In this document: positions 2,629-49,291 of the stretch, piece by piece
Layout: every line of letters starts with the position of its first letter
Numbering within the stretch: the first letter of the stretch is position 1
DNA from: Raja brachyura
Taxonomy: Eukaryota
DNA length: 49,876 nt
Reading direction: 5' to 3'
Assembly (NCBI GenBank): GCA_963514005.1
Contig: CAUPSL010001410.1
Span: 1 to 49,876 of the forward strand
Notes under the pieces: model-generated
What the model saw: the letters and a program-made list of their open reading frames with translations, nothing else
What the model was told of the DNA's origin: nothing
Database searches by the model: none
Program-made: the position numbers and the translations under genes

Positions 2629-2695
2629 ATGCGCTCTCTCCGGCTCTGGCTCTGTCTCAGCTCGGTCCTGCTCTCGGTGTCAGTCCTGGGTTACA
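2629..2695 (+). CDS. Gene A exon 1, signal peptide MRSLRLWLCLSSVLLSVSVLGY
   Basis: ATG at 2629, hydrophobic core, phase-1 donor A|GTAGGT; paralogous exon at 44355-44415. Confidence 0.85.
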
Positions 2696-3743
2696 GTAGG
2701 TGTTTTTCCTTCTTTGTCTCATCCCATACTGCCAGTCCTCCAGCTGTCTGTACTTTAGCTCACACCGAAGTCAGTCAGCGGTGGTTAATATACTGGTCTT
2801 GACCGCCACTGAGTGCCCTTGCGAGGGAGGGGATGAGGTCTTGATGATCCACGTCACTCCTTCCGTGCGGGTCAACCAGCGGCAGAGTACGTGGATACAA
2901 TTGCACACGGACCAATCCTTTCTAAACCAGAGTGCGACACTTGACGGATAAGAGGGTGGAATGTTGTTCGATGCAAGCGAAAAATGGGGAGTTGGCATTA
3001 AAAGCAGAGGAGATCACAATCTTATTTAAAAGCAGAGCAAGTGAAGATTGCAAGGAGACCCGATTGGGGCATGTAAAATTGTAAAGGGTGTAAAACAGAG
3101 TGAGGTTGTTCCCATCGGTGAAGGGAACAAGATACAGTTGCAGATTGAAAGCGATTGGTCAAACCGTTGCAAAGAAACAATGTTCCTCGCTGGTCTGCAA
3201 CATATGGCCGGGCGGAAGTGAGGTTGGGGGAGGAAAGGGTGAGTGATAAAAATGCAGCGTTTTAAGGAAATGACGAATACCTCAGAAAGGAAGGCATTTG
3301 CGGGTCTATTGGTCCAGGTGACTTGGTTTGATAACATTGCTCTTTCATAGAGGAAGGGGCCGAATGTCCCATTTCCCTGCTGTAACTATACTGTCACACG
3401 GACTGAGTTCCAGAAACGTTTTTGCACCAAAGCCGAGTTACCAAATGTTCAAATATCGCCGCTCCTGCAGAAAGAAAATACAATGGTATTTATACTGATG
3501 ACTGACCGAAGATTCAGACACGAATTATAGACAGCCCATCCCCTGCCCCAGAATTGGATCCCAGCCTGTCGCTATCTGCTGGCTGTTCATTGCTGCTGGC
3601 ACAACACCCCCCCCCCCCCCCCCCCCCATCCGCAAATATTCCACCCTTACCCCACCCCAAATATCTCTCAGTCTGGAACCCACTCCCTTGACTAACTGCA
3701 GATCTGTTCCCCAGTTGTTCGAATATTGACTCATCTCTCTCTT

Positions 3744-3787
<44 letters not shown>

Positions 3788-6700
3788 GATTTTTCGTATC
3801 ATGGTTGGACAATATCCGGTGCTGATGACGTATCTGCCGTGGAAGGGGCCTCCGCTGTGTTGCCGTGTACATTCACCCACCCACCCACTGATCACATCCT
3901 CACCGGCTCCGTGCTATGGCACAAGAGAAAGTCCGGGGCTGAGAGCGTTGTTTTTAACTGTACATATCCCGGCCCCGCACGCTCCCGGTGCGATGAAGTG
4001 ACACAGGAAGCCGGAGGGAGTCGGTTGCGATTCGCAGGGAACTTCACACAGAGGGATGTGTCAATAATGGTGGAGCGACTAAGCCGGGAGGACGATGGTG
4101 CTATGTATCGGTGCCAAGTGGACCTCAATATTGGACCATTTCACACTGTGGTTCCAACACGCCTGACTGTGAGATGTGAGAAACAATGCTTAAATGCTGT
4201 AGCTTTGCCCAGATCGCACGGGTCAAACGCTTCCCTGGCACGCTGATGATCAATAAATGTTGATCAAGCACGTCAAGGTGTGAAGCGCCGGGTCCCCCTC
4301 TTACTCCCTTTCCAGTGAATCCCGCTGCACAATGTTAAACAACAAATTAACCAACAAGCCTCTCCGTCGTTGGAGTGCAGGAGGTAACAGGAGCACCCGG
4401 GAAAACCCAACGCGGTCACGGGAGAATTAAAAAATCCATACAGACAGCACCCCTAGTCAGGACCGAACCCGGGGCCCTGGCGCTGTGATACAGCAACTCT
4501 ACCGGTGCACCACCGTGCCGCCCTTAAATAATGAATGGAATAAACATTACAAAAAAATGACTACGGCAGGGATAGAACTAGCAGCTCGACGCTCCATGAA
4601 ACAGGCGCTAATGGTTTGATAGAGAGGGGGGGGGGGGGGAAGAGAGGAGGAGGGAATTCTATTTTTGACAGCAGAGAACACATTGCAGTGATCTTAGAGA
4701 TCACTATTCAGGGACGGTCCAATGGGGCCTAATGGTTGCAACTGAGAAGCAAGAAGCTTCTTAAGAAGCATAGATAGAAACATAGAAAAATGGGAGCAGG
4801 AGTAGGCCATACGTCCCTTCAAGCCAGCACTGCCATGCAATATGATCATGGCTGATCATCCAAAATCAACACCCCGTTCCTGTTTTTCCCCCCATATCCA
4901 TTGATTCCTTTCACCCTAAGAGCAAAATTTAACTCTCCTGAAAACCTCCAGTGCATTGGCCTCCACTGCCTTCTGTGGTAGAGAATTCCAAAGATTAACA
5001 ACTCTCTGGGTGAAAAAGATTTTCCTCATTTCAGTCCTAAATAGCGTAAGCATTAATATTAAACCGTGGCCCTGGTTCTGGACTCCCCCAACATCGGGAA
5101 CATTTTTTCATGTATCTAGCTTGTCCAATCCCTTAAGAATTTTGTAAAGTTTCTATAAGATCCTCTCTCAACATCTCTCAACCACATTTTCAGGGAATAC
5201 AAGCCCAATTGAACCATTCTTTCCTCATATGTCCGTCCCGCCATCCCGGGAATTAGTCTGGTGAACCTGCACAGCACTTCTTCAATAGCAATAATGTCCT
5301 TCCTCAAGTTAGGAGACCAAAACTGCACATAATACCGCAGGTGTGGCCTCACTAGGGCCCTGTACAACTGCAGTAGGTCCTCCTTGCACCTAAACTCAAA
5401 TCCTCTCTCAATAAAGGCCAACATGCCATTAGCTTTCTTCACTCCCTGCTGTACCTGCATGCTTACTTACAGTGACTGGTGTACAAGCACATCCAGGTCT
5501 CGCTGCACCTAACGTTTTCCTAATCTGACACCATTCAGAGAATTATCTGCCTTCTTGTTGTTGCCACCAAAGTGGACAACCTCACATTTGTCCACATTTT
5601 ACTGCATCTGCCATGCACCTGCCCACTCACCCATCACATCCAAGTCTCACAGCATCCTCCTCGCCACACAGCTTTGTATCATCCGCAAACTTGGAGACAT
5701 TGCATTTAATTCCCTGATCTAAATCGTTAATATATTTTGTAAATAACTGGGGTCCCAGCACTGAGCCTTGCAGCACTCCACTGGTCACTGCCTGGCATTC
5801 TGAATACGACCAATTAATTCCTACTCTTTGCTTCCTGCCTGCCAACCAGTTCTCTATCCATGTCAATACCGGTCCCCCAATAACATGTGCTCTAAATTTG
5901 CACACTAATCTCTTGTGTGCGACCTTGTCAAAGGCTTTTTGAAAGTCCAGATATACCACATCCACTGGCTCTCCCTTATCCATTCTACTTGTTACATCCT
6001 CAAAAAATTCCAGAAAATTATTCAAGCATGATTTCCCCTTCATAAATCCATGCTGACTTTGACCGATCCTGTCACTGCTTTACAAATGAGCTGCAATTAC
6101 ATATTTTATCATCGACCTCAGCATCTTCCCCACTACCGACGCAAGGCTAACTGGTCTATAATTCCTTGTTTTATCTCCCCCTCCTTCCATAAAAAGTAGT
6201 TACATTAGCAACCCCCCAGTCCACAGGAACTGATTCAGAGTCGAGAGAATATTGGAAAATTATCACCAATGCATCCATGATTTCTTGGGCCACCTCCTTG
6301 AGTTCTCTGGGATGCAGACCATCAGGCCCTGGGAATTTATCTGCCTTCAGTCCCAACAGTTTTCATAACGCAATCTCCTGACTAATGTGGATTCCCTTCA
6401 GTCCTCCCTCCCACTAGATCATCTGTCCACTAGTATTTCTAGGAGATAGTTTTTGTCTTCCTTAGCGACCATAAAACATAGAAACATAGAAAAACATAGA
6501 AAATAGGTGCAGGAGTAGGCCATTCGGCCCTTCGAGCCTGCACCGCCATTCAATGTGATCATGGCTGATCATCCAACTCAGTATCCCATACCTGCCTTCT
6601 CTCCATACCCCCTGATCCCTTTAGCCACAAGTGCCACATCTAACGCCCTCTTAAATATAGCCAATGAACTGGCCTCAACTACCTTCTGTGGCAGAGAATT

Positions 6701-9700
6701 CCAGAGACTCACCACTCTCTGTGTAAAGAATGTTTTCCTCATCTCGGCCCTAAAGGAATTCCCCCTTATCCTTAGACTGTGACCCCTTGTTCTGGACTCC
6801 CCCAACATCGGGAACAATCTTCCGCCATCGAGCTTGTCCAACCCCTTAAGAATTTTGTAAGTTTCTATAAGGTCCCCCCTCAATCTTCTAAATTCCAGCG
6901 AGTACAAGCCGAGTCTACCAATCTTTCCTCATATGAAAGTCCTGACATCCCAGGAATCAGTCTGGTGAATCTTCTCTGTACCCCCTCTATGGCAAGGATG
7001 TCTTTCCTCAGATTTGGAGACCAAAACTGTACGCAATACTCCAGGTGTGGCCTCACCAAAACCCTGTACAACTGCAGTAGAACCTCCCTGCTCCTATACT
7101 AAAATCCTTTCGCTATGAATGCTAACATACCATTTGCTTTCTTCACTGCCTGCTGCGAAACAAAACTACTCGTTTAACTGTTCTGCCATTTCCTTATTTC
7201 CCATTATAATGTCACCTGTCTCTGATTGTACGGGACCAACATTTGGCTTCGCTAATCTTTTCCTCTTCACATATGTATTTAAGCTTTTACAGTCAGTTTT
7301 TATATTCCCCGCAAGCTTTCTTTCGTGCTCTATTTTCCCCCCTCTTAATTAACCCATTTGACCTCCTCCGTTAAATTCTAAATTTCTCCCAGTTCTCCGG
7401 TTTGCTGTTTCCTCTGAACAATGTATATGCCTCTTGCTTAAATTTAACACCATCGTTAATTTGCCACGATAGCCACGGTCGCGCCGCCTTTCCCGTGTTA
7501 TTTTTACGCCAGGCTGGGAAGAACAAATGTAATTCATCTATGCGATCTTTAAATCTTTGCCATTGCGTCTCCACCGTCACTCTTTAAGTATCATTTGCCA
7601 GTCTATCCCAGCCAACTGCCGTCTCATACCATCAAAGCCTGCTTTCTTTAAGTTCAAGACCCTAGTCTGTGAATAAACCGTGTCGCTCACCATCTTAATG
7701 CAGAATTCCATCATATTATGGTTACTGATGCCCAAGGGCCATAGGACAACACAATGCCCAGTCTAGGATGACCTGCCCACTAGTCGGTTTTTCTACTTAT
7801 TGGCTTAAAAAACCGTCCCGTATACATTCGAGAAATGCTCCTCCCCAGTGTTGTTAGCAATTTGGTTGGCCCAATCTATATGTAGATTATTTAGACTTTG
7901 TTGGGGTTATTCTAAGGGCACCTAAATCTGAACTGGAATTAGACGAACACACATGCATGGAGATGGTGGAGACTCTCTAGAATGTTAAGACAATTCACCC
8001 ACAAAACGTTGATACATTCCGGTGTCTGTCCTTCCCTCAGCTCCCGGCGGGAATTTCTCAGTGGTGACTGGGACTGAGGGGGCTTCGGCTACATTACTAT
8101 GTGTGTACCCACCGCCTCCGCTCAAGCACACCCCTCTCGCGTTCACATGGATGAGGAAGGATCCCTACCGACACATCGTCACGTTCAGACCCCAAGCTGA
8201 TGGATCCTGGGCGGCGGAGAACGGTGCAACACGGTTCGAGCTGGTCGGCAACCCAGAGCGGGGAAACGCCTCAACCAGGATAAAGCAGCTGAGTGTGCAG
8301 GACAGTCACGACTACCTGTGTCTGGTGCAGATCAAGAAACCGGATTCAAAACACCTTCATAATATACACCCCCCTTTTATTCATCAGTACCAGCGTGAGC
8401 TCCGGCTGCGGGTCACACCCGGTAAGAAACCATTGCCAAATTCTGCAGTTTACAGCGAGGATGTAGAGAGAGGGAGGGGAGCAGGAACAGAAACCCCGCC
8501 TCTCGGCTCGTAAAGTTGAAGATCAGGGACCTGGGGTGTGGGATCTCGGCTGCCACACCCAGCAGTAACTACATTGACCTGGACTTGTTAAACCAAGGTG
8601 CAGTCTGCTCCGCAAATTGCTATGAAAGATCTCGGTCAACCATTGACAACTGAATCTCATAATGAAGCATGTAATAGCAGAACACAAGACATAGGCTAGA
8701 GGGCTTAGGTTGCAGGTGAAATAGACAAAGGTTAAGTGAGATGTGCGGGGAAGTCGTTTTGCATAGGGGTGGTGGTTGCCTGGAACGCACTGGCAGAGGT
8801 GGTGGTGAAAGCAGGTACGTTGGTGGCGGTTAAGAGGCTTTTTGATAGGCTCATGGATATGCAGGGAATATGATGGTATGAATCCTGCGTGCAGACAGAC
8901 GAGATTAGTTTTCCTTGGCATAATATGTGGTACAGACACTGTGGGCCGAAGAGCAGGTTCATGTGCTCCAGTTTCCTATGTCCCGCGTAGATTTATGCAT
9001 GATGTGATGAGTAGAATTGATGAAGGCTAATTGATGTGGGGTGTTTGGATTTTCAGAAAAATCTCGGTCAAGTCCCGCATGGGAGATTGGTCAACAATCT
9101 GAAATCCGGAGTAGTCAGACGTAGGGTGCCATGCGCCCGTGATTGAAAATTGGTTCTCGGACGAGATAGCAAGTTGGGAATCAACGCATCTCTCGCAGGT
9201 TGACCAAATGTGGCCAATGGGATGCCATAGCGTACAATGCCGCGGCCCCATTTAGTCCCTAAATGTATTAGTGTTTTGTCTGAATGTTCAAATGACGGTG
9301 TTGCAATCTGACGGATAACAATAGAGCGGGTGAGACTCTGGGTGGGCAGCATGATGTAACGAAGGTTCAGTGTGTGTGGGCAGGCCGGTGGGTGGGTGGG
9401 AATGCGGCAGATGGAACGCGGCAGACATAAAAGCTTTTCACTGTACCTAGATACACTAAATAATAAACTAATTAAATTAATAATGACATTAAATGTGAAG
9501 TATGCCACATGGGTGAACTAGACGGAAAAGCAGAGTATTTGTTAACTGTGAGAAGTTGGGCCACCTTTGATGATCAGAGCGATATGGCAATGTGTGCATG
9601 TTCCACTGAAGGCCGACGGGCCGATATACAAGAGAACAGAACAGCTCTGGTTAGTTAATTTGTATTGGGAGATTATTTGTGTACGTCAATAAAAATGCCT

Positions 9701-12700
9701 TAACACTGTATAATTATATGGGGTCTGGGTGAGGTTCCACCTGCAGAACTGAGGGCAGCGTTGTTCTTTTTAAAGGAAATTGAGAAATCAACAATCAGGG
9801 ATTGCCCCGCCCCGAATCTCTTCCCGCTTTCACTCCTCAATGCAATCGTTCTGGAGGGGTTCCGACCAAAACATCCCCTGTGCATTGCCTCCACAGATGC
9901 TTCCTCACCCACCGCGTTACTCCATCTCTTTGCGTTTTGCACAATAAACATATTAATGGTGTCAAGGGAGTGCGGTGACGATGCACCCGGCTCGAGTGCT
10001 GTAGACCTGAGTTAGGATATGCAGATGTAGGATTTGTGTGAAACATATCCTCGCAGAGTGCATTTGCAAATGTTGTTTTGTTGCGTAGATTAAACAGCTT
10101 GAAGATGAGAATAAATTGTTGACCCCATCCGAATCGGTGGGAATCCGCGAAATCCGGAATCCCCCCCCCCCCCCCCCCCCCCCCCTCAACCTGCCCGCCC
10201 CAAACGACGTGGAGCGCCAGTCACTAAGTTCATTATAAACAGAAAAAGAGCAATTAGTAGATTTGGAAATGTAGAGTTTCTACACTGACATGAAATATTA
10301 GTTGTATCTCTCTCTCTCTCCGCAGTTCCTGCGTCATCCACCGATATACTCACACTAGTGACTGGGATGTTTACTCTGCTACTGTGAATACTGGCGTCTT
10401 ACCAATGATACTGCACATTCACAATATTAACCCATCGCTCTCGGATTTACCACCCATTTCAAGCATTTCAGTTCGTAGCCCTTTGAAATGGCACATTGTC
10501 CGTTGCCAATTAAGTTAGTACAGGAGGAACGATACACGATCGAGTCCTGTGGTCGTGATTGCTATGTGGTTTTTAATCTCCCTTTTCTTATTTTTTCACT
10601 CACACGTATTACCCTCACTTCCTTCAGAATAATTCTGCTGTTTAGCGACACATTATCACCACATCTATAAATGAGCAGCCTCCAATAGTACTCTCTCACT
10701 CTCTTTGCTAGAATCATGTTTGACCTCTCTCACTCTCTCTTCAGTCACACAGGTTGCCCCCATTGTGATCTTGAGTATTCCGCTTGGATTGAAAACCCTG
10801 GCACTGTTAGTGATGTATTTCATTTATTGTAGTTCCAAACTCAGGTATGTAACATTATGCATTCCTTTCTCTCTAAGTGACCAAAACATAATTAACAGAG
10901 AACCTTTGTGCGTTTAGTTTACTTCCGTTTAAAATACAGTGCGGAAAAAGGCCCGTTGAGTCAGAGCCGACCAGCGATCCTCTCACACTAACACCATCCT
11001 GCATACACTAAGGATAATTCACAATTATACCAAGTCAAATAGCCGGCAAACCTCTACGATTTGGAGTGTGGGAGGAAAGCGAACTGTGAGAAAGTCCACG
11101 CTAGTCAGAGGGAGAACGTACAAACTCCGTACAGACAGGACCCGTGGACAGAGCCGAGCCCGTGTCTCTGACGCTGTGAGGCAGCAACTCTCCAGTGCTG
11201 TGCCACCGTGCGTTCGTTCATGAGTCATAGGAGCAGTATTAGGCCAAAAGGCTAATCGAGTCTCCGTCATTCGGTCATGGCGCATCTATCTTTCCCTCTC
11301 AATCCCATTTTCCGGCCTTCACTTTCCACATTTTAACAGTGATGCACTTCAAAAAAAATATTTTACTGTGATAACTTTTGTATTTTTCCACGTTGAATTG
11401 CCTTCATGAATGCAAACTCACAATATATGCCTGGCAAAGCACTGCTTCCTCACCGGAGTAGAAGCCCAATACACTGTTGTCTTTGCCCATACCACCTGCA
11501 CTGAGACGCGTTGATAAGTCCTAATCACAAACCGAGATGGGATCGAAAAAGCATAATCACAAGGTCAAGTGACAGCAGCAGAATTAGGCCATACGGCACA
11601 TCAAATCTGCTGCGCCATTCAATCATGGCTGATCTATCTCTCCCTGATAACCTCACCCCCTCACCCCCCCCCCCCCCGGTATTTCCCCATAACCCTTAAC
11701 ACCCGTACTAACCCGCACTTATAGCCTTCCTTCACAGTGATCACTGTGGTGGATGTTTATGTTAAGTTCTATGGTGTATTGTGTCCTTTTAATTGTATGG
11801 TTGCATGGTAACTCAAATATCACGATACCTCAATTGGTGCATGTGACAATAAATGTGAACTTGAACTTGAACTTGAACTAATGAACAATCTATCTATACC
11901 TGCCTTAAAATTATCCATTTACCTGGCCTCCACAGCATTCTGTGGCAAGATTCTACAGATTCACAAGCCTAGACTAAATACACCTCTCCCCATCTCATTC
12001 CCAAAGGAACGTTCTTTAATTCTGAGACTATGTCGGTAAATTTCACTATTCGGTAAATTTCACTATTCGGTAAATTTCAATGAGGTCCACTATCATCCTT
12101 CTAAACTCCAGCGAGCACAGCTCTGGTGTCGTAAAAGGCTCATCATACGTTAACCCAGACCAATGGTACACCCGTCTCCTGGTCTGCAGTCCTGCTTCTA
12201 GAGCTAACAGCTCGACCCGAAACGTCACCTATTCCTTTTCCCCAGACATGCTGCCCGACCCACTGAGTTATTGCAGCTTGTTTTGTCTAGCTCGCTCATA
12301 TGTTTGGGTCATGATTAGACCTCCACAACCACCCCCTGCTCCGACATCCAATTTAATCCATAGAGTTGGGCAATCCAAGATTTTAGCAACCTAATACTAT
12401 TAAAATGAAACTAATTGTATGATAATTGTTGATAATCAGATTGCTCCTCAGATTCTAATCTCAGTCCTTTCCTGATCTACAACACTCTGCCATTCCTTCG
12501 CTCCACCGATTTCTAAACGAAGATCCCTCTGTCCCTCTATGTGTGTCGAACTGACAACAGTCGAAACAAAATGCTACACCTTCCCCCTGCAGAGATTAAT
12601 ATCCACCTGTCGTTCGCCCACCCATTTCAACATCTGATCAATATAATTATGTGTATATATACACACACTGAACTTTTTTTGGTCCCGTTATGTACTATGT

Positions 12701-13271
12701 TTACATATTCTGTTGTGCTGCAGCAAGTAAGAATTTCATTGTCCTATTTGGGACATATGAAAATAAAACACTCTTGACTCTCTTGACCTGCGGTTGGGTG
12801 CATGCGATTACGTGTTAACCCCAAATGTTGTTGTAAATAATAACTTTCGACTGAGAGATACAGCGTGAAAACAGACCCTTCGGCCCATCCAGTCCGCGTA
12901 GACCAGCGATCACCCCGTACTATGCGACGCACTAGGGACTATTTGAAAGTTTACATAATCAAATTAACCCACAAACCTGCACGTCTTTCGAGTGCGGGAG
13001 GAGAACGGAGATCCCGGAGAAAAAACACGCGGTACACACTCCACACAGACAGCACCAGTAGTCAGGATCTAACACGGTTCTCTGGCAGTGCAAGTCAGCA
13101 CCTCTACCGCTGCCGCCACTGTGCCGCCGAAGAGTCTCCGTTCAATTGAAATCCCGGACCAAACACCGTCAAAGATTTCTGCTGGCTGTTAACAGAGTGG
13201 CCATATATGTAACATTACCCACACTCACTTTAATGTCATGTTCTGTCCACTGCAGATTTGGTCGAGACTGA
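2629..13271 (+). CDS. Gene A: Siglec-15-like IgSF receptor (leader-V-V-TM(Lys)-short tail), predicted 316 aa; exons 2629-2695, 3789-4175, 8041-8421, 10745-10844, 13256-13271
   Basis: All junctions are GT-AG and phase-compatible (1,1,1,2), total 951 nt with no internal stop. V1 resembles the human SIGLEC15 V-set domain as recalled (VSA..G..AVLPCTFTHP, VFxC...C, VERL...DD..YxC). The terminal exon is the least certain and rests on homology with gene B. Confidence 0.8.
3789..4175 (+). CDS. Gene A exon 2, Siglec-15-like V-set Ig domain (V1)
   Basis: (CT)n tract then tgtag acceptor. B-strand LPC, C-strand W, extra Cys pair (FNC...RC), F-strand YRC, G-strand TRLTV. Phase-1 donor T|GTGAGA. Confidence 0.92.
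4345..4524 (-). mobile_element. HE1-type tRNA-derived SINE
   Basis: Reverse strand reads GGGCGGCACGGTGG...GGTAGAG...GGTTCGGTCC (A/B boxes), then the core shared with other copies here. Confidence 0.75.
4769..7890 (-). mobile_element. Degenerate CR1 (HER1-type) LINE ORF2, interrupted by a younger CR1 at 6470-7152
   Basis: DFQKAFDKV, QGSVLGP and FADDT motifs in minus ORFs; (catagaaa)-type tail at 4769; frameshifts. Confidence 0.9.
6470..7152 (-). mobile_element. Young 5'-truncated CR1 nested in the older CR1
   Basis: (catagaaa)n tail at 6470-6500; RPHLEYCVQFWSP; near-identical to 17168-17610 and 23068-23557. Confidence 0.9.
8041..8421 (+). CDS. Gene A exon 3, second V-set Ig domain (V2)
   Basis: ccctcag acceptor; TLLC, FTW, RFELVGNPERGNAS, DSHDYLC, LRLRV; phase-1 donor G|GTAAGA. 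Confidence 0.92.
8660..9700 (+). mobile_element. Old, decayed CR1-type fragments in gene A intron 3
   Basis: CR1 3'-end-like sequence at 8660-8980; ggattttcagaa (DFQK) remnant near 9047; counterpart at about 47220-48260. Confidence 0.55.
10326..10387 (+). other. Candidate stalk exon with inactivated donor, or alternative terminal exon (VPASSTDILTLVTGMFTLLL*)
   Basis: CTGAC branch-like site, (CT)n tract and cgcag acceptor. Phase-1 frame is open. GGATGT at 10365 is one change from a GTATGT donor. Confidence 0.35.
10745..10844 (+). CDS. Gene A exon 4, transmembrane segment with central Lys (VTQVAPIVILSIPLGLKTLALLVMYFIYCSSKLR)
   Basis: Pyrimidine tract with tcag acceptor, phase-2 donor AG|GTATGT; Lys codon 10792-10794; IPLGLKT conserved in gene B. 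Confidence 0.88.
10935..11212 (-). mobile_element. HE1-type SINE
   Basis: Same core as the other copies. Confidence 0.75.
11560..12150 (-). mobile_element. CR1 3' fragment interrupted by a + strand LINE 3' end with (gaactt)n tail at about 11720-11878
   Basis: ccattcaatcatggctgatc terminal motif; SLEFRRM..DLIE.Y peptide. Confidence 0.65.
12850..13130 (-). mobile_element. HE1-type SINE
   Basis: Same core as the other copies. Confidence 0.75.
13256..13271 (+). CDS. Gene A terminal coding exon (RFGRD* if spliced directly from the TM exon)
   Basis: ctgcag acceptor; upstream intron and downstream sequence align with 49215-49350; TGA at the same position in both paralogues. Confidence 0.55.
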
Positions 13272-17165: not shown

Positions 17166-17167
17166 GC

Positions 17168-31964: not shown

Positions 31965-32100
31965 NNNNNNNNNNNNNNNNNNNNNNNNNNNNNNNNNNNN
32001 NNNNNNNNNNNNNNNNNNNNNNNNNNNNNNNNNNNNNNNNNNNNNNNNNNNNNNNNNNNNNNNNNNNNNNNNNNNNNNNNNNNNNNNNNNNNNNNNNNNN
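31965..32100. other. Assembly gap (136 N)
   Basis: Run of n. Confidence 1.
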
Positions 32101-32890: not shown

Positions 32891-32934
32891 TGTATCATTG
32901 TCATATTCACACTGAAGTAGGGTCACGACCAGAA

Positions 32935-33650
32935 AGGTCACCTATCCATGTTCTACAGAGATGCTGCCTGACCCGCTGAGTCATTCCAGCACTCTGTGAA
33001 ACGTCACCTATCCATGTTCTCCACAAATGCTACCTGACCCGCTGAGTTACTCCAGCACTCTGTGAAACGTCACCTATCCATGTTCTCCACAGATGCTACC
33101 TGACCCGCTGAGTTACTCCAGCACTCTGTGAAACGTCACCTATCCATGTTCTCCACAGATGCTACCCGACCCGCTGAGTTACTCCAGGACTCTGTGAAAC
33201 GTCACCTATCCATGTTCTCCACAAATGCTACCTGACCCGCTGAGTTACTCCAGCACTCTGTGAAACGTCACCTATCCATGTTCTCCACAAATGCTACCTG
33301 ACCCGCTGAGTTACTCCAGCACTCTGTGAAACGTCACCTATCCATGTTCTCCACAGATGCTACCTGACCCGCTGAGTTACTCCAGCACTCTGTGAAACGT
33401 CACCTATCCATGTTCTCCACAGATGCTACCTGACCCGCCGAGTTACTCCAGCACTCTGTGAAACGTCACCTATCCATGTTCTCCACAAATGCTACCTGAC
33501 CCGCTGAGTTACTCCAGCACTCTGTGAAACGTCACCTATCCATGTTCTCCACAAATGCTACCTGACCCGCTGAGTTAATCCAGCACTCTGTGAAACGTCA
33601 CCTATCCATGTTCTCCACAGATGCTACCTGACCCGCTGAGTCAATCCAGC
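32935..33650 (+). repeat. 66-bp minisatellite, about 11 near-identical copies, from a Penelope-like terminal sequence
   Basis: acgtcacctatccatgttctccac recurs at 33001, 33067, 33133 ... 33595. Confidence 0.95.
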
Positions 33651-33779
33651 ATGTCTTTTTTTCTGTTGCATCAATAGGCATCTTAGAGTTATAGAGTCCT
33701 AAAATGATGCAGTGCGGAAACAGGCCCTACAGCCCAACTTGCCCGAATCATTGTTGTGGTGTAGTGCTGCCTGAACATT

Positions 33780-36945: not shown

Positions 36946-36959
36946 ACCATTTCCCATCC

Positions 36960-37567: not shown

Positions 37568-37569
37568 GT

Positions 37570-40500
37570 GGGTTGGTTTTAGCGGGGCTTTGTTTAACAG
37601 AGGCCCAGGAGCCGTTGGAGCTGAAGGAGTACCCAATCTGCAACGTTCCAGCACACGTCAAAAGAAGTGGTCTGGAGGAAGCGGACTAGAGGAAGCAGTT
37701 GATTGGGAGCAACCCCAGGTTTGTATTTCTCCTTTCTGGTTAAGGGCAAAGATTCGTTCAGGATTCAGTGAGTTAAGGGTTCAGTGAGCTAAGGGTACAG
37801 TGCCCTAATGGTTCAGTGAGTTAAGGGTTCAGTGAGTTACGGGTTCAGTGAGTTAAGTTAAGGGTACAGTGAGCTAAGGGTACAGTGCTTTTTTAGTAAA
37901 GGTACAGTTTAAAGGGTTAAGATTTTTATAGTGTGAGTGAGTTGATTTAATTTGGGGGTAAGCCATGACAGTTGAGATCGGCCCCATGGTTTGCTCATCC
38001 TGCAACATATGAGAGATCAGGGATATGGTCCGTGTCCCTGGTGACCACGATTGCAGGAAGTGTGTCCAGCTGCAGCTCCTGGCAGACCGCATTGAACGAT
38101 TGGAGATGCGGTTGGATTCATACTGGAGCATCCACGATGCTGAGAAACTCGTGAACAGCACGTACAGTGAGTTGGTCACACCGCAGGTAAACGTTCAGCG
38201 AACAGAAAGGGAACGGGTGGCCAGTAGCCAGCGTAGCAGTAAGCAGGTAGTGCAGGAGTCCCCTGCGGTCATCCCCCTTCTAAACACATATACCATTTTG
38301 GATATTGTTGGGGGAGATGGCTCATCAGGGGAAGGCAGCAGCAGCCAAGTTCATGGCACCGTGGGAGGCTCTGTGGTACAGGAGGGGAGGAAAAAGAGTG
38401 GAAGGTCTATAGTAATAGGGGATTCAATTGTAAGGGGAATAGATGGTCGTTTGTACGGCTGCAAACGAGACTCCAGGATGGTATGTTGCCTCCCTGGTGC
38501 AAGGGTCAGGGATGTCATTGTACGTCTGCAGAACATTCTGGAGGGGGAGGGTGAACATCCAGTTGGCGTGGTGCACATTGCACCAATGATATAAGTAAAA
38601 CACGGGATGAGGTCCTATAATGTGAATTTAGGGCACTCGGAGATAAACTTAAAAGTAGGACCTCAAAGGTAATAATCTCTGGATTACTACCAGTGCCACG
38701 TGTTAGTCAGAGTAGAAATAGGGGGATATTGCAGATGAATAAGTGGCTTGCAAAAAGGTGCAAGGGGGGGGGATTCAAATTTCTAGGGCATTGGAACCAG
38801 TTCTGGGGGAATTGAGACCAGTACAAACAGGACGGTCTGCACCTGGGCTGGAATGGAACCAATGTCTTTGGGGGATTGTTTGCTAGTGCTGTCGGGGAGG
38901 ATTTAATCTAATGTGGCAGGGGAATGGGAGCATGAGCAGAGAGACAGAGGGGTGTAAAATGAGGGTAGAAGCAACAGGTAGCAAGGTGAAAAGTAAAAGT
39001 GGCAGGCAGACAAATCCAGGGCAGAAATCAAAAAGGTCCACTTTTCAACATAATTGTATAAGGGGTAAGAGTGTTGTAAAAACAAGGCTGAAGGCTTTGC
39101 GTCTCAATGCAAGGAGCATTCGTAATAAGGTGGATAAGTTGAATGTGCAGATAGTTATTAATGAATATGATATAGTTGGGATCACGGAGACTTTGCACCA
39201 GGGTGATCAAGGCTGGGAACTGAACATTCTGGGATATTCAATATTCAGGAGGGATGGAGAAAAAGGAAAATGAGGCGGGGTAGCGTTGCTGGTTAGAGAG
39301 GAGATTAACGCAATAGAAAGGAAGGACATTAGCTTGGAGGATGTGGAATCGATATGGGTAGAGCTGCGAAACACTAAGGGGAAGAAAACGCCAGTGGAAG
39401 TTGTGTACAGGCCACCCAATAGTAGTAGTGGAATTGGGGATGGCATAAAACAGGAATTTAGAAATGCGTGCAACAAAGTTAAAACTGTTATAATGGGTGA
39501 CTTCAATCTACATATAGATTGGGTGAATCAAATTGGCAGGGGTGCTGAGGAAGTGGATTTATTGGAATGTATGTGGGATACTTTTCTAAACCAACATGTA
39601 GAGGAACCAACGAGAGAGCAGGCTATTCTAGACTGGGTATTGAGTAATGAGGAAGGATTAGTTAGCCGTCTTGTTGTGCGTGGCCCCTTGGGCAAGCGTG
39701 ACCACAATATGGTTGAGACCTTCATTAGGATGGAGAGTGACATAACTGATTCAGAAACAAGTGTTCTGAACTTAAAGGAAGGTAACTTCGAGGGTATGAG
39801 ACGTGAATTGGCCAAGATAGATTGGCAATTGATTCTTAAAGGGTTCACGGTGGATATGCAATGGAAGGCATTTAAAGACTGCATGGATGAACTACAACAA
39901 TTGTTCATCCCAGTTTGGCAAAAGAATAAATCTGGGAAGGTAGTGCATCCGTGGATAACAAAGGAAATCAGGGATAGTATCAAAACAAAAGATGAAGCAT
40001 ACAAATTAGCCAGAAAAAGCAGTCTACCAGAGGACTGGGAGAAATTCAGAGTCCAGCAGAAGAGAACAAAGGGCTTAATTAGGAAAGGGAAAACAGATTA
40101 TGAAAGAAAACTGGCAGGGAACATAAAAACTGACTGCAAAAGTGTTTATAGGTATGAGAAGAGAAAAAGATTAGTTAAAACAAATGTAGGTCCCTTGCAG
40201 TCAGGAACAGGTGAATTGATCATGGGGAACAAGGACGTGGCAGACCAATCGAATAACTACTTTGGTTCTGTCTTTACTAAAGAAGACATAACTAATCTGC
40301 CGGATATAGCAGCAGACCGGGGTCAAATGCGATGGAGGAACTGAGTGAAATCCAGGTTAGTCGGGAAGTGGAGTTAGGTAAATTGAATGGATTAAAAGCA
40401 GATAGGCTGCATCACAGAGTGCTTATGGGAGTAGCCCCAGAAATAGTGGATGCATTGGTGATAATATTTCAAAATTCTTTAGATTCTGAAGTAGTTCCTG

Positions 40501-41521
40501 AGGATTGGACGGTAGCTAATGTAACCCCACTTTTTAAAAAGTGAGGGAGAGAGAAAACGGGGAATTACAGACCAGTTAGTCTAACATCGGTGGTGGGGTA
40601 AATGCCAGAGTCACTTATGAAAGATGGGGTAGCTGCACATTTGGAAAGTGGTGAAATCATTGGACAAAGTCAGCATAGATTTATGAAAGGTAAATCATGT
40701 CTGACGAATCTTATAGAATTTTTCGAGGGTGTAACGAGTAGAGTGGATGTGTTATATCTGGACTTTCAGAAGGCTTTTGACAAGGTCCCACATAAGGGAT
40801 TAGTATGGAAACTTAAAGCACGCGGTATTGGGGGTTCAGTATTGATGTGGATAGAGAACTGTCTGGCAGACAGGAAGCAACCAGTAGGAGTAAACGGGTC
40901 ATTTTCAGAATGGCAGGCAGTGACTAGTGGGGTACCACAAAGCTCGGTGCTGGGACCCCAGCTATTTACAATATATATTAATGATTTGGACGAGGGAATT
41001 GAATGCAATATCTCCAACTTTTCGGATGACAGTGGTCATCCACGAATCTGGAGGCTGCAAGGTGATTTGGATAGGTTGGGTGACTGGGCAAATGCATGGC
41101 GGATGCAGTATAATGTGGATAAATGGAGGTTATCCACTTTGGTGGCAAGAACAGGAAAGTAGACTATTATCTGAATGGTGGCCGATTAGGAAAAGGGGAG
41201 ATGCAACGAGACCTGGGTGGCATGGTACACCAGTCATTGAAGGTAGGCATGCAGGTGCAGCAGGCAATGAAGAAAGCGAATGGTATGTTAGCATTCATAG
41301 CAAAAGGATTTGAGTATCGGATCGGGGAGGTTCTACTGCAGTTGTACAGGGACTTGGCCGGACAACACCTGGATTATTGTGTACAGTTTTGGTCTCCTAA
41401 TCTGAGGAGAGATATTCTTGCCATAGAGGGAGTACAGAGAAGGATCACCAGACTGATTCCTGGGATGGCAGGACTTTGATATGAAGAAAGACTGGATATA
41501 TTCAGCTTGTACTCGCTAGGA
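37570..41521 (+). mobile_element. Near-full-length dead CR1, duplicate of 25841-29898, 3'-truncated
   Basis: Same 5' junction; ORF1 esterase at 38025-38594; 352-aa APE/tether ORF at 39286-40344; DFQKAFDKVPH; shares the deletion just after the ADD motif. Confidence 0.93.
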
Positions 41522-42609
41522 TGCAGACGTGCTCACGTTATTTAGTATTTTTCCCATCTCTCTCTCTCTCCCTCTTTCTCTCTCTCCTCCAAGTTTGGTT
41601 CTGTTTGCCTTTATTTGCTTCAGTTTCATCGCCCGGCCCACTTTGCTCTTTTGATGGTCCGGGAGAGCTCGGTTCTTGCAGACCTGAGGGCTGCCTTATC
41701 CCCAGTTCGGAACGCTGCGTCCGGGGTCTTCAGAACATGGGATAACATGGAATTACTATGCGGGGTGATTGTTGGTCGACGTGTACTCAGTGGGCCTAAC
41801 AAGGGCCCGTTTCCACGCTGTATCCCTAATGTAAACTATAAGTTACCTCAACAAACAATGTATCTATATCAGTGAAACGGGATTTCCCAACACATTAAAG
41901 ATACCACTCGAACATAATATGCGAGAGCTTTGTCATCAAATAACAGAGAGAGAGAGAGAGAGAGAGACGTGCAGTGAAAGCCTTTTATATTGCGTGCTGT
42001 CCATCAAAGAACTTTACACGAATGCAATCAAGCCGTCCACAACCATCACGCTGCTGAATCACATTCAGCACCCGGACCACAAGCCGACCCCCGGGTCGAA
42101 ACACGAAGACATTTGCACTGAGGTTCCATTACTGTGGTTTGGTTTAGAAGAATAACTGACAACTTACCTCAACCTTACAGTTTTGATCTTGCATTTATTG
42201 GGCCTGTAGAGTCGCAGCAACAATGTCATTGTTGTCATGGTGCATTCGACAGTTAAACACGCGTGAGATCTTATTGATAGCAGAGGGCACCCGGGAATTG
42301 GGGAGGAGATTTCTGATGGGAATGACCATTGGACTTGACCGGCGGTTGGTGAGTGCCCGGCTCTTTGTTTGCGGCAAGACGCAGATCCCACCCTTTGCTG
42401 CCCGATCAAACCACGGCCTCCAGTTGCATTGTTCTATGGGGGACCGGATATGTCAGCGAGGTTGCCGGAAATCTGGTTTAACGTTATTGGGACACAAATA
42501 AACAAAGAGTTGAAATGGCCCTGATGCTGAGAGACGCATGATATTACGGGACTCAGCTTAAACTGGCTGCTTCCAAACAAACATTGCAAAATAATGTTCA
42601 TATGTTCTC

Positions 42610-42980
42610 AATGGATTTTTGGATCATTTGCCCCTGACGTTTATTGCAGTGTTTCCCTATAGTCAAGGTAGGATTCCCGTGGGCCAAGTTTGCTGTGAAG
42701 CAGCTCATTCCTGGAATGACTTTGCCCTCTGCTCTACCTCCTGCTTCCTATGAGTCATGGATACCAGTGTTGCTTTTTAGCGGTGTTGAACATTCTGCCG
42801 CAAATGATAAGAGCAACTTCTGCATTTCAGAGTCAAGGAAAGAAAACCACGAGAGGCAAACAACCGAGCTGTTGACGAAGAAGTGATTGTGGGGTTATCT
42901 TTGCAGAGTTCAGCTTCCGCTCACATTTGGGTTAGCAAATTGTGCAAAACTCGTTGATTCACGTCCTCATACAAACAGTA
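42610..42980 (+). pseudogene. Decayed promoter and leader remnant (third copy)
   Basis: Same alignment and same TGA. Confidence 0.6.
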
Positions 42981-42999
42981 TTTACCATTTGCTACCCCC

Positions 43000-44230: not shown

Positions 44231-44254
44231 GTGCCTTGACGACTATCTCTCAAC

Positions 44255-44354
44255 TTTTTGCAGGAAGTGAAGAAACATTTCCAGCCTGTTCCGCATTCTG
44301 CATCAAGAAGCTCACAGCAGTGGGTGAGGTGGACACCACACTGAAGTGTTGGCG
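44255..44354 (+). promoter_or_regulatory. Putative proximal promoter and 5'UTR of gene B with an ETS site
   Basis: CAGGAAGTGA at 44261-44270, similar distance from the ATG as in gene A; alignable 5'UTR. Confidence 0.42.
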
Positions 44355-44415
44355 ATGTGCTCTCTCCGGGTTTGTCTCTGCACCGTCCTGCTCTCCGTCT
44401 CAATCCACGGTTACA
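44355..44415 (+). CDS. Gene B exon 1, signal peptide MCSLRVCLCTVLLSVSIHGY
   Basis: ATG at 44355, phase-1 donor A|GTAGGT; 5'UTR aligns with 2588-2631. Confidence 0.85.
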
Positions 44416-47400
44416 GTAGGTGATTTTTTTTTTTTTTGGTTTACCCTGTCTCGTCATCTCGACCAATGTTCCGTTTCCCAGCTGTTTGTACTTTGGCTCA
44501 AAGGGGTGGGACGAATGGGGAATGTGGTGATATTGTCCATACCTAAGTGCCCTTCAGAAGGTGGTGGTGAGGATCCCTCTTGGTGAAGATTATCTGGCGA
44601 CGGCTAAGATGGAGGAAAATGCATATGGAGATCGACATTCATAAAACGGCGATAAGCAAGAGGGGAAAAGGTGACAGAGAGCAGGCGGGCATGTGGAGAG
44701 AGAATGAACAGCTGAGCAGCCGTGATGTTATTTTCCGGAGGTGCGAGCTGAAGGTGCCGACTGGTTTCCAGCTCCTACCATTGAGGTCGGGAGGAGATCT
44801 AATGGAGGGAATTAACACTGCGCACAGGGAGGGTGTCCCCATTGGTGGACAGAGAAGAGATGACGATAGAGAATGGGGGTGATTGGGCAAGGAACCAAGT
44901 GTGTTGCTGGGGAACATGAGTCCTCGCGGGGAGCGGCTCCACTGGGACGCGGCGCCGGCAGCGGGAGCGGGGGTGGGCGGTGGAGGAGACGGTTAGATTT
45001 AACCGACGGTATGTGACAGTATGGAACTTCCACGGCTGTGTGTTGAGAATGTGGAGAAGTCCACTGGCTGGATTGATGTTACATGGAGTCAGTATAGAAC
45101 CGATGGACCGAATGGCCGTCTCCACTGTGAATCTATTATGTGACAGTGAGGGAATCCCAAGAATCCATCTCCATCCCCGGTCCTGCAAAATGTCCACACA
45201 TTTCCCCTCCCCAGAAAGTAAATCAGCAACATTATAAAAACCTACTGACCCGGGGAACAGACGCGAATTACATATCCATGAACAGTTGATTATATCCCAG
45301 CTTGCAAACCACTCCCCGTGTATTACTATCTGTATCTGTCCCACAGACATCTGAGGACATCGCTTGTGACAACACCCCGGGAACAGTTTGGATTTGGAAC
45401 TCCATACCTATACTCGTTGCAATATTAACCCCCCCCCCCCCCCCTCCATCTCTCTCCCTCTCTCTCTCTTTCTCTCTATTTCTCTCTCTCTCCCTGTAGA
45501 TGTTTCGTACAATGGTTGGACACTGTCCGGTGCTGATGAGGTATCTGCCGTTGAAGGGGCATCCGCTGTGCTGCCGTGTACATTCACCTACCCACCCACT
45601 GATCGCAACGTCACCGGCTCCGTGTTGTGGTACAGGTTGCGATCATGGACACGCAGCCTTGTGTTTAACTGCACATATGCCGGACCCGGCCGCCCCCGAT
45701 GCGATGAAGTGACACAGAAGGCCGGAGGAGGTCGGTTCAAATTCGTGGGGAACCTCAGAGAGGGAGATGCCTCGATACTCGTGGAGCGACTGAGACGGGA
45801 GGACAGGGATGAGTACCGATGCCGCCTGGAGCTCAGTGTTGGGAATTTTCAATCTGCGATTCCGACGCGGCTGACTGTGGAAGGTGAGAACAATGCTCGG
45901 AGACTGTCGCTGCCCCAGAGCTCACGGACCGTCGGTTACCCGGTACAATGCTGATCAATACATGTTGATGGTTCAATTCAATAATACTGTATTCTCACGT
46001 ACCTAGGTACAGTGAAATACTTTGTTTTGCAGACAACCCTGAAAGGGGGGGGGGGGGGGGGGGGGAGCTGAAGCCGGGGGTTCCTGCTCCTGATTCCTAT
46101 CCAGTTAATCCGTCTGGACAGAGGGCTCCTGGAGTAGACGAGGCGCCGGCCTGGTCGACAGTCAAATACAGGTGGATTGTGTAAACCGAGAGATAGGAAG
46201 ATGGTGATCACCTTGTTAGAATTATTCTCCAACTATTAATGGCAACCGAGGCGCCCAGTCGGAAAGGAGGTGTCGGTGCCCAATCCCCTGTGGGCGGTTC
46301 TCCCTCTCGGTGTGGAGTTCACCGCTTCACACATTGAATATTCCCCGTGGAGAACAGTGTTGGGATCCGGGTAAGCGCGGGTTCGCTGTCGCTCAGGGCA
46401 GCGCCGAACGAGAGCCGACCCTTCAGCGGCGACCAGTGACACCTGATGCAGAGCCAGCCTTGAATGTATCCAGTCCCCTGCGCCCTCTGACCCACCTTCC
46501 CTGGGACCGTCACTGTCAGCTCCACACTGGGCACCTCCTCCACCCACTCCCACAGGGAGAGGTCGGTACAAGACGATTCACCCACAGAACGTTGATACAT
46601 TCCGGTGTCTATCCTTCCCTCAGGTCCCGGCGGGAATGTCTCCGTGGTGACTGGGACTGAGGGGGCTTCGGCCAAGTTACCATGTGTGTATCAACCATCC
46701 CAGTATGACCGCAGCGCCCTCACGGTCACATGGATGAGGAAGGATCCCTACCGACACATCGTCACGTTGAGACCCCAAGCTGATGGATCCTGGGCGGCGG
46801 AGAACGGAGCAACTCGGTTCCAGCTGGTCGGGGACCCAGAGCGGGGAAACGCCTCAACCAGGATAAGGCAGCTGAGGGTGGAGGACAGTGACGGCTACCT
46901 TTGTCTGGTGGAGTTCAGAAAACCGGAAAACTACGATGCGACAATGTACGTCGATGAAAAGTTCAGGAGCAGCGTACACCCCCCGTACACCCATCAGTAC
47001 CAGCGTGAGCTCCAGCTGCGGGTCACACCCGGTAAGAAACCATCGACACATTCTGCCGTGTAGAGCGAAGGTGCAGAGGGAGGGAGGAGAACAGGAACAG
47101 GAAACCCGGTCTCCCGGGACACAGTGGGCGCAGCCTCGCATCTGGAGGGTCAGATACAACTCCAGAGAAAAGTCAAACATAGTTGATCAATCTATTGGAG
47201 TCCTTTGGCGAGGTGAGGAGTTGAATGCCTAAGAGGGAACAAGGGACTGGGGTACGTTTGGATTCTCAGAAGGATCTAGGTTGGGTCCCAGCCAGGAGTT
47301 TGGGAACCAGGCGCGAGAAGGCGGCATTAAGTCAACGCACTGTCGGGGATTGAGAAGCAGTTATCGAGCAGAATGTGGAATGAAATATCTGGATCTCTGT

Positions 47401-49291
47401 CACGTTGAGAGTCTGCGGCTGGCGAGGTACTTCAGAGATTGGTTCTTGTCTCAGCTATTCATAGTCTGCATCAGCGAGTTGATTGAAGGAGGGGAATTGT
47501 CAGGTCTGATGATGGAGGTCTGAAGTGCCTTGGGACTGTGAGAGGGCAGGGGGACATGGAGATTCGGGAAAGGTGGACAAGTTGAGCGAGTGGGTGGGAG
47601 CATATTATGGAATAAAATGTGGCAAATTATCCACACGGCTGAATAAACATAAATCCAGTGTTTATTAAATTGTGAGGGATCGGGTGCTATGGATGTTCAA
47701 AAGGGCCTGAGTGTGCTTGTTCTCATGTCAATAAAGTATGATGTACTGATGTGGAAGAGTCGAGAAAGGCAATAGTTGGTCAGGTTATATCAAGAGAGGA
47801 TTTATATTCAAGGCTTGAGATCTTTTACTGCAGTTATATAAGGATCTAGCGGGACCTCACCTGCAGTTCTGTGGCGGACTTTCCTATTCTTAACTATAAT
47901 AAAGTCACGATTAGTGTGGAGCGAGTGTAGTGAAGATTCAGTCACTGTTTCCCGGAAGGGCAGGTTGATTGAAGATCAGCGGAGATTGAGTAGACCAGAG
48001 GCCGTGGAGAATGCAGGTATAGGAACATTGAGCAGAAAAAAAGCTACTGGGGGAACTCGGTAGGCCAGGTAACATGTCTGGTAGGAAATTGGCGAATGAC
48101 AATTCATATCGAGACCTTACCTCAAAACTGGATAAAACGACATATTTGGATTTCCTTCTACAGTTGCCTGACTTCCTGAGCGCTGTCAGCAGGCTGTTAT
48201 TTGCTCGAGCAGATTAGGCCTGTATTGAGTGTAGAGAATGAGAGGTGATCTTAGTGAAGCAAACACCATTTGTACATTGTCGATCGCTCCCCTTTCCCAT
48301 TGACCACTCTGACCTCTCTCACTCTCTCCTCAGTCACGCAGAGTTACATGGTTCTGATCCTGTGGATCCCTCTAGGATTGAAAACCATTTTCCTTTCAGT
48401 GATGTGTCTTATCTTCTACCGTGACAAACTCAGATATGTAATATTGCTTTTCTATGCATGTAATATAAACTGGGGTGTGATTGAAAAATGTGAGGCTTCC
48501 TAGGCCGCGCCAACCATCGATCATCCATACACTAGTTCCATCCCAGCACTATAGGGGGCGTTTGCAGAGGACAATTATCCTACAAACCCGCATGTATTTG
48601 GGATATGAGAGGGACAAAAAACATGCGGTCACGGGTAGCACGTGGAAACTCCGCACAGACAGCACCCGTGATCAGGATCGAACCCGGGACTCTGCGCTGC
48701 AAGGCAGCATCTCAACAACTGCGCCACCGTGGTACCCCTGTCTCGTTGGCAATACATGGTTCAGGTGCATCATGTACCTACAGATGGAAGAACAGCTTCT
48801 TACCCGCTCAGGCGATTTGTGAAACCTCTCAAAAGATAAGAATGTATTCCAGATCCCCCAGTCTACCATGATGGGGCCTTTCTCTGTAAGACTATATTCT
48901 GCCCGGCTTGGCTCTATGGAATAATTTATCTGGATGACACGCGAAACAATGCTTTTTCCTTGTACCTGTGTCAAGGTGACGATAATAAACCAATATCTTG
49001 CTCCAGGTCAGACAATCCTCCTCACTGTCAACACAACGACCAACATACGTGTCCCCTGTTAAGTAAATCACCTGTTTCGCATATTGAAGTCCACCTCAAA
49101 TTTAGTTGTCAAACGCTGACATTGACAATAACGTCTCTGCTCTGGAGAATTCCGTTGAAATATCCGTCCGTCTCTCTTCACAGATTCAAATGGCGGCTGT
49201 GAATGGTGATGCCAGAAATGGCCATGTGGTACAAATTACCGAGGCTTGTTTTAATTGGTCTTGTTGTGTCCTCAGCAAGCGTGGAAACTGA
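44355..49291 (+). CDS. Gene B: paralogous Siglec-15-like V-V receptor; exons 44355-44415, 45500-45883, 46624-47031, 48334-48433, 49276-49291; TM-exon donor mutated
   Basis: Exon-by-exon homology with gene A, same phases, open frames. Non-canonical AG|ATATGT after the TM exon. AATAAA at 49455-49460. Confidence 0.75.
45500..45883 (+). CDS. Gene B exon 2, Siglec-15-like V-set domain (V1) retaining the F-strand Arg (YRCRLE)
   Basis: About 64% aa identity to gene A V1 (hand count, 83/129); (CT)n with tgtag acceptor; donor G|GTGAGA. Confidence 0.92.
46624..47031 (+). CDS. Gene B exon 3, second V-set domain (V2) with a 9-aa longer F-G loop
   Basis: ccctcag acceptor, KLPC / VTW / DSDGYLC motifs, donor G|GTAAGA; 408 nt versus 381 nt in gene A. 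Confidence 0.92.
48334..48433 (+). CDS. Gene B TM exon with central Lys (VTQSYMVLILWIPLGLKTIFLSVMCLIFYRDKLR)
   Basis: Acceptor region nearly identical to 10721-10744; Lys codon 48381-48383; donor +1 is A (48434), not G. Confidence 0.82.
48500..48737 (-). mobile_element. HE1-type SINE
   Basis: caggatcgaacccggg B-box on the minus strand. Confidence 0.7.
49276..49291 (+). CDS. Gene B terminal coding exon (SKRGN* in phase 2; ASVETDPSEEAEQTSVPTAVQPASQ* to 49352 in phase 1)
   Basis: cctcag acceptor homologous to 13255; downstream AATAAA at 49455. Confidence 0.5.

Follow-up and report, generated by a model that had tools for sequence, protein, structure and literature searches.

Two paralogous tandem-V receptor genes of Raja brachyura as probable activating-type members of an elasmobranch paired receptor family of Siglec-15 descent

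We analysed a 49,876-nucleotide contig of the skate Raja brachyura (GenBank assembly GCA_963514005.1, contig CAUPSL010001410.1, forward strand; 'the window' below is this whole stretch) that contains two paralogous genes on its plus strand, gene A (2629–13271) and gene B (44355–49291). Each is predicted from genomic DNA to encode a leader, two tandem V-set immunoglobulin domains (V1 and V2), a transmembrane helix and a short tail. A and B are likely to be two activating-type paralogues within a multigene, elasmobranch-wide family of paired immune receptors that descends from the Siglec-15 lineage. The first-pass annotation of this DNA had proposed two spliceable paralogues with this layout. 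Exon coordinates, splice phases and copy numbers bear this out: in tblastn searches of the window, the V1, V2 and transmembrane open reading frames each matched at exactly two places, always on the plus strand and in identical order. Exons were searched one by one, and joining was limited to a local reading of the frame of the 16-nucleotide tail exon. The predicted exons and one altered splice site are as follows.

Gene A leader exon, 2629..2695, plus strand: start codon ATG and signal peptide, phase-1 donor GTAGGT; 81% identity to the leader region of gene B.
Gene A V1 exon, 3789..4175, plus strand: Siglec-15-type V-set with four cysteines; glutamine (4115–4117) at the position of the arginine essential in Siglec-15.
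Gene A V2 exon, 8041..8421, plus strand: V-set with two cysteines; leucine after the F-strand cysteine.
Gene A transmembrane exon, 10745..10844, plus strand: lysine within IPLGLKT; donor GTATGT; ends in phase 2.
Gene A tail exon, 13256..13271, plus strand: adds RFGRD and then a stop; junction frame as in the RefSeq orthologues of gene B.
Gene B leader exon, 44355..44415, plus strand: 81–86% identity to the leaders of family proteins P0003 and P0194.
Gene B V1 exon, 45500..45883, plus strand: Siglec-15-type V-set with four cysteines; essential arginine retained.
Gene B V2 exon, 46624..47031, plus strand: F–G region nine codons longer than that of gene A.
Gene B transmembrane exon, 48334..48433, plus strand: lysine within IPLGLKT; 87.5% identity to both orthologues of gene B.
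Gene B donor dinucleotide after the transmembrane exon, 48434..48435, plus strand: AT, where gene A has GT.
Gene B tail exon, 49276..49291, plus strand: given the exon junction used by the orthologues, SKRGN and then a stop.

The predicted coding sequences are 951 (gene A) and 969 (gene B) nucleotides long. The two genes are 65–74% identical, with DNA similarity confined to the exons and their immediate surroundings. All ten exons are open, and splice sites are canonical except for the donor of the gene B transmembrane exon. Splice phases run 1/1/1/2 in both genes, a pattern usual for genes of the immunoglobulin superfamily, and AG acceptors are preceded by pyrimidine tracts. Both transmembrane segments carry IPLGLKT, with the lysine at mid-membrane, about ten residues into the helix. 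The tail exon measures 16 nucleotides in either gene, and the spliced tails (RFGRD in A and SKRGN in B) are free of tyrosine, as the first reading of the letters had it. A C2 exon was not found in the window by tblastn with C2-bearing relatives, in agreement with that reading, and C2 is also absent from the RefSeq orthologues of A and B.

By sequence and predicted fold, V1 is a Siglec-15-type V domain. All four V exons passed the Pfam V-set threshold (V1A 3.5e-9, V2A 1.8e-12, V1B 1.7e-11, V2B 4e-14). When V1A was compared with solved structures in a single-sequence search, human Siglec-15 (7ZOZ) was the top match (E 2.7e-11), followed by NaV beta-2 at 1e-4 and then by CD33 and sialoadhesin; the alignment to 7ZOZ includes AVLPCTFTHP, the N-terminal tryptophan and all four cysteines. 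An AlphaFold (AF2) model of V1B, with a predicted local distance difference test (pLDDT) score of 86, likewise returned 7zoz_A as its best Foldseek match (TM-score 0.82, root-mean-square deviation 2.3 Å), with the sialoadhesin V domain next; the same order of fold neighbours has been reported for Siglec-15 itself (PMC10264397). In the Siglec-15 crystal structure a canonical C64–C142 disulfide is joined by an unusual C95–C104 bond that ties the C' strand to the C'–C'' loop (PMC10264397). The four V1 cysteines map onto these two pairs and are ~97% conserved across 107 family V1 domains, so the extra cysteine pair claimed for V1 at the outset is upheld. Directly after C142, Siglec-15 carries R143, an essential sialic-acid contact whose replacement (R143A) abolishes binding (PMC10264397). 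At this position V1 of gene B has Cys-Arg and V1 of gene A has Cys-Gln. A further search of the V1 exon against a protein set limited to 70–224 amino acids gave no match and is uninformative given that size range.

V2 is also a V-set, with the canonical cysteine pair and without the extra C'–C'' pair, and leucine occupies the arginine position in 105 of the 115 family V2 domains. Against single-V chains of the PDB, a V2-only profile scored Siglec-15 highest (42 bits), ahead of the CD276 IgV domain (29.9), domain 1 of PVR (~29) and domain 1 of pIgR taken alone (23); CD276 and pIgR reach higher totals when several of their domains are summed. The string RFxLVGNP...YxCxVEF, which V2 had been said to echo, is a real shared feature of V2 (RFxLVGNP...YLCLV) and Siglec-15 in the alignment, and the sequence link it provides is modest. 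A model of V2B (pLDDT 88.5) found generic V-sets as its Foldseek neighbours, namely CRIg/VSIG4, JAML and NaV beta-2. From these sequences, V2 is plausibly, not demonstrably, a diverged Siglec-15-type V domain.

The domain affinities bear on whether A and B belong to a receptor family that has already been described, such as the MDIRs of the clearnose skate. MDIRs are a multigene set of activating and inhibitory immunoglobulin receptors in skates (PMC3031540); V2 has moderate matches to pIgR, and NCBI automatically names some members of our family "pIgR-like". We nevertheless regard this assignment, or one to a similar known family, as very improbable. MDIR domains have been described as CD300/TREM/FCAR/pIgR-like (PMC3031540), which by description sets them apart from V1 and V2. 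V1 is Siglec-15-like in sequence and fold, with CD300, TREM and NKp44 outside its best 60 PDB matches, and the V2 profile places pIgR domain 1 well below Siglec-15. Furthermore, none of ~150 named database relatives carries the MDIR name. NITRs, like MDIRs, resemble the family in being multigene, V-containing fish receptors with activating, inhibitory and short forms. The NITR V domain ends in a J-like FGxGT motif, whereas V1 ends in PTRLTV and V2 in RELRLRVTP, neither with such a motif. NITRs are not known outside bony fish, whereas the close relatives of A and B are all elasmobranch.

The relatives of A and B point instead to an elasmobranch-wide, multigene family, as judged from its sequences. 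A HMMER search with V1A returned 167 proteins, 12 of them below 1e-30, and the family has RefSeq gene models from at least 15 elasmobranch species. These include the skates Leucoraja erinacea, Amblyraja radiata and Rhinoraja longicauda, the rays and sawfish Narcine, Hypanus, Hemitrygon, Mobula and Pristis, and the sharks Heterodontus, Heptranchias, Mustelus, Chiloscyllium, Hemiscyllium, Stegostoma, Rhincodon and Pristiophorus. Species have many clusters, and many distinct ones lie on one chromosome-size contig of a single species. The initial proposal of a multigene family is thus borne out, and its restriction to one lineage is not. In alignments of short DNA contigs of related organisms to gene B, 3–8 extra contigs per run cover the V2 framework at 46769–46877, which is only a hint of multiple copies; these alignments gave no meaningful joints, those listed being in repeats.

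Orthologues could be assigned to each gene. That of gene A is L. erinacea LOC129715273 (P0189), with 86% identity in V1, 86% in V2 and 87.5% in the transmembrane exon. Those of gene B are L. erinacea LOC129695295 and A. radiata LOC116971356 (P0190 and P0191), with 76–81% identity in the V domains (80–81% in V2) and 88% in the transmembrane exon. The gene B orthologues end in DKL-SKRED and DKL-SKSGD, matching the exon junction and frame of the predicted tail model. Since A and B have separate orthologues in other skates, the split between them predates the split of those skates.

Full-text literature searches found no published description of the family. The suggestion that it is undescribed holds to that extent and falls short in another respect: the genes are already predicted in public RefSeq annotations under automatic names, among them "Siglec-15" and "pIgR-like". 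For annotation, this means that the shark and ray labels "Siglec-15", "sialoadhesin-like", "pIgR-like", "JAM-like" and "HAVCR1-like" would denote a single family and not SIGLEC15 orthologues.

We sorted 122 family proteins according to their C-termini. Activating-type proteins combine V1–V2 with a (C)IPLG(L/V)K transmembrane segment and a short tail of some ten residues such as DKLRKRRD; A and B are of this type. Inhibitory-type proteins have the same ectodomain, an uncharged transmembrane segment and a tail of 100–150 residues in which CTYAS(I/L) motifs recur and V(I/T)YAAV, a canonical immunoreceptor tyrosine-based inhibitory motif (ITIM), is terminal. Single-V and apparently soluble forms are also present. 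The activating and inhibitory proteins of Leucoraja and Amblyraja fall within a common V2 clade (97 to 100 support) and a common V1 clade. Their sequences thus identify the family as one of paired activating and inhibitory receptors. The earlier designation as activating receptors fits A and B, with their transmembrane lysine and short tails, and fails for the half of the family with a neutral transmembrane segment and an ITIM tail. The window holds the activating type only, and a search of it with family proteins found no ITIM-tail exon.

The essential arginine is kept in 80 of 107 family V1 domains. With a single row for each distinct V1 in each signalling type, all 24 inhibitory rows had the arginine, compared with 15 of 32 activating rows; the remaining 17 lacked it. 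Every loss observed was in an activating or soluble member, with at least seven state changes on the tree. An independent-pairs test of arginine loss against activating type had too few pairs (median p 1), although its direction never reverses, and the raw counts are inflated by isoforms and close relatives. We therefore treat the association as a lead, not a result. The glutamine of gene A is also present in its little-skate orthologue.

A resembling pattern is seen among the paired and Arg-mutated Siglecs of primates (PMC6288428). Primate CD33-related pairs (Siglec-5/-14 and Siglec-11/-16) also place near-identical ectodomains on ITIM or Lys-transmembrane backbones, show signs of gene conversion and have repeatedly lost the essential arginine, and Siglec-12 also has two V-sets (PMC6288428). 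The family of A and B differs from them in belonging to another Siglec lineage, which is Siglec-15-like and not CD33-like, in lacking any C2 domain and in occurring in elasmobranchs. One tentative reading, which we hold to be possible but rather doubtful, is that sharks and rays turned the Siglec-15 lineage into a counterpart of the primate CD33-related cluster: fast-turnover paired receptors without C2, in which inhibitory members always keep the arginine and activating members, gene A included, repeatedly lose it. In current teaching, Siglec-15 is among the few conserved, single-copy vertebrate Siglecs, and rapid paired-receptor evolution belongs to the mammalian CD33-related Siglecs. If the reading is correct, the same strategy arose independently from a different Siglec, ~400 million years apart, and the pattern is what would follow if activating copies evolved as counter-measures against pathogens exploiting inhibitory ones. 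The family would then provide activating receptors with and without the arginine, a natural series that bears on the decoy or counter-pathogen idea.

We next considered the origin of the tandem V arrangement. V-V-C2-transmembrane proteins are present in the chimaera Callorhinchus (LOC103174418), the shark Heptranchias (XP_067838218) and rays, for example Mobula (XP_062903801, named "Siglec-15", with a transmembrane lysine). Amblyraja has a four-V version, and the lungfish Protopterus protein XP_043934105, also named "Siglec-15", is V-V-C2. The C2 domain of the chondrichthyan proteins matches the Siglec-15 C2 of lungfish, coelacanth, piranha and fox. We built a maximum-likelihood tree of 84 V domains (IQ-TREE, LG+C20), with the following ultrafast bootstrap (UFboot) and Shimodaira–Hasegawa-like approximate likelihood ratio test (SH-aLRT) support.

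Family V2 clade: UFboot 100, SH-aLRT 99.
Family V2 together with domain 2 of all chondrichthyan V-V-C2 proteins: UFboot 99, SH-aLRT 97.
Family V1 clade: UFboot 81, SH-aLRT 95.
Clade of domain 1 of the chondrichthyan V-V-C2 proteins: UFboot 100, SH-aLRT 97.
Clade of bony-vertebrate Siglec-15 V domains: UFboot 93, SH-aLRT 86.

The grouping of family V2 with domain 2 of the V-V-C2 proteins implies that the second V was already present in a C2-bearing protein before the chimaera/elasmobranch split. The tandem V is therefore older than the family, and C2 was lost from it, not exchanged for a new V as had been supposed from the window. On this view the ancestor of the family would have been a V-V-C2 gene that lost its C2 exon and then underwent tandem duplication and patchy gene conversion. 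Within single proteins of lungfish, gar, salamanders and a characiform, the two V domains group most closely with one another, which implies separate duplications in these bony vertebrates. On these sequences, V duplication in the Siglec-15 lineage is repeated and independent. Siglec-15-like genes with two or more V domains include lungfish P0028, gar P0027, salamander P0024 and P0029 and characiform P0052; lungfish P0002 has seven.

The same proteins bear on whether A and B are recently duplicated skate orthologues of SIGLEC15 that retain its mammalian role. Siglec-15 is the best solved relative of V1, the transmembrane lysine is present and NCBI names several family members "Siglec-15". Compared with Siglec-15 from mammals to teleosts (7ZOZ), A and B share the V1 type, both disulfides, the N-terminal tryptophan, the F-strand Cys-Arg (in gene B), a transmembrane lysine in an LG-x-K context and a short tail without ITIM. 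They depart from Siglec-15 in their second domain, which is V-set and not C2, in belonging to a multigene set with inhibitory twins as opposed to one conserved gene, in the glutamine of gene A and in the G strand of V1, where ligand contacts are not visibly conserved. We find SIGLEC15 orthology hard to credit. The stronger candidate for the orthologue is a separate V-V-C2 gene with a transmembrane lysine and a Siglec-15-type C2 that rays, sharks and chimaera carry, and the family V1 clade stands apart both from the osteichthyan Siglec-15 V domains and from V-V-C2 domain 1. Species carry many paralogues, inhibitory ones included, and A and B share only 65–74% identity, each with its own orthologue in other skates. 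The V-V-C2 models of chondrichthyans and lungfish share the tandem V-V with the family, the chondrichthyan domain 2 groups with family V2 and several have the transmembrane lysine, but they keep the Siglec-15-type C2 and their domain 1 is separate from family V1.

For activating-type members of the family that we propose, the product would be a type I membrane protein with a signal peptide, V1, V2, a transmembrane helix with a central lysine and a tail of about nine residues. In Siglec-15, association with DAP10 and DAP12 requires the transmembrane lysine, a residue conserved across vertebrates from fish to mammals (PMC7226832). By analogy with Siglec-15 Lys274, the lysine of A and B would recruit an adaptor of the DAP12, DAP10 or FcR-gamma type, such that ligand binding activates the cell, and both proteins should signal through an adaptor with an immunoreceptor tyrosine-based activation motif or a YxxM motif. 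Full-text literature searching for DAP12 of cartilaginous fish gave no usable result. With its arginine kept, gene B may bind sialic acid via V1. Because R143A abolishes binding by human Siglec-15, gene A is probably non-binding in the canonical way; most likely this mode of sialic-acid binding has been lost, and the protein would recognise another target or serve as a decoy-type partner.

The two genes had also been described as diversifying, and selection for diversity is not evident from this pair. Nei–Gojobori estimates of the ratio of nonsynonymous to synonymous substitution rates (dN/dS) between A and B were 0.52 for V1, 0.59 for V2 and 0.43 for the transmembrane exon. The proportion of nonsynonymous differences (pN) exceeded that of synonymous differences (pS) in no stretch, except marginally at the end of V1. 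A and B show no synonymous change at V2 framework codons 36–50 and 71–80 (8146–8190 and 8251–8280 in V2A), and the B–C and F–G loop regions of V2 have pS of 0.4–0.8 and pN of ~0.3. A framework without synonymous change next to loops with high pS fits patchwise gene conversion and not loop-directed positive selection; the sequences thus suggest patchwise gene conversion between the paralogues.

Several observations weigh against reading A and B as activating-type receptors of Siglec-15 descent. Human Siglec-15 contacts sialic acid through R153, Y154 and E155 of the G strand, and these residues are not visibly conserved in V1. No Siglec is among the top 50 Foldseek neighbours of the V2 model, and since the tree was built without an outgroup beyond Siglec-15, the case for V2 deriving from a Siglec-15 V domain is made from profile scores and shared motifs only. 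Family V1 grouped with V-V-C2 domain 1 in 0% of bootstraps; a simple scenario of C2 loss from one ancestor is thus incomplete, and the tree does not place the exact source of family V1. Finally, both gene models were read from genomic DNA alone, and the AT donor makes canonical splicing after the gene B transmembrane exon impossible, so that the tail of gene B may differ from the predicted one or the gene may be decaying. For gene B, two details of the first description needed correction: this donor, and the end of the V2 exon, which lies at 47031.

These last points would fit A, B or both being decaying pseudogene copies, non-functional relics of a duplicating cluster. Gene A lacks the essential arginine, dN/dS of 0.5–0.6 is fairly relaxed and both genes are surrounded by many fragments of long interspersed nuclear elements (LINEs). 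We nonetheless judge decay to be unlikely. The ten exons have intact phases and open frames with a single non-canonical donor, and dN/dS is well below 1 in V1, V2 and the transmembrane exon. The glutamine of gene A, common to an orthologue at 86% identity, is thus an old, retained state. As the gene B transmembrane exon lies upstream of the altered donor, the membrane anchor survives the change: a GTAATA donor four nucleotides downstream, or read-through, would still give a Lys-transmembrane protein with another short tail, and we therefore do not read the altered donor as turning gene B into a secreted lectin. The AT at 48434–48435 could also be an allele or an assembly error.

Read-through of the transmembrane donor (10843–10860 in A and 48432–48449 in B) encodes LRYV(T/I)L in both genes, which fits the ITIM pattern by its letters. 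The motif sits right at the membrane and derives from the splice-donor consensus itself. The read-through form corresponds to RefSeq isoform X2 of the little-skate orthologue of gene A.

Searches with family proteins and leader regions found no family exons upstream of A and no leader modules between A and B beyond the ten exons. The leader regions match only each other and two short, weak DNA stretches (952–984 and 33685–33744). The single run of N in the window falls between the two genes.

Assembly gap, 31965..32100, no strand: intergenic repeat DNA, outside both genes.

The gap lies ~18.7 kb past the last exon of A and 12.3 kb ahead of the first exon of B, and neither gene has an exon or reading frame that reaches it. 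The spacing of A and B in this assembly, and the count of genes between them, are accordingly provisional. Its neighbourhood consists of LINE reverse-transcriptase fragments, pieces resembling short interspersed nuclear elements and a 66-bp tandem array (32932–33651, 10.9 copies).

Other repeats were noted in the window. A (TC)n microsatellite of 22–25 repeats lies directly before the V1 acceptor in both genes (3734–3784 and 45449–45492), a position conserved although the introns of A and B are otherwise unalignable. An inverted match between 814–1087 and 42714–42987 (67% identity) looks like a common repeat. The intergenic DNA from 14000 to 44000 is dense in LINE pieces, many of them short C-terminal reverse-transcriptase fragments. 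It includes a nearly complete LINE with ORF1-like and endonuclease/reverse-transcriptase reading frames on the plus strand (38025–41479) and a second ORF1-like copy at 26434–27353.

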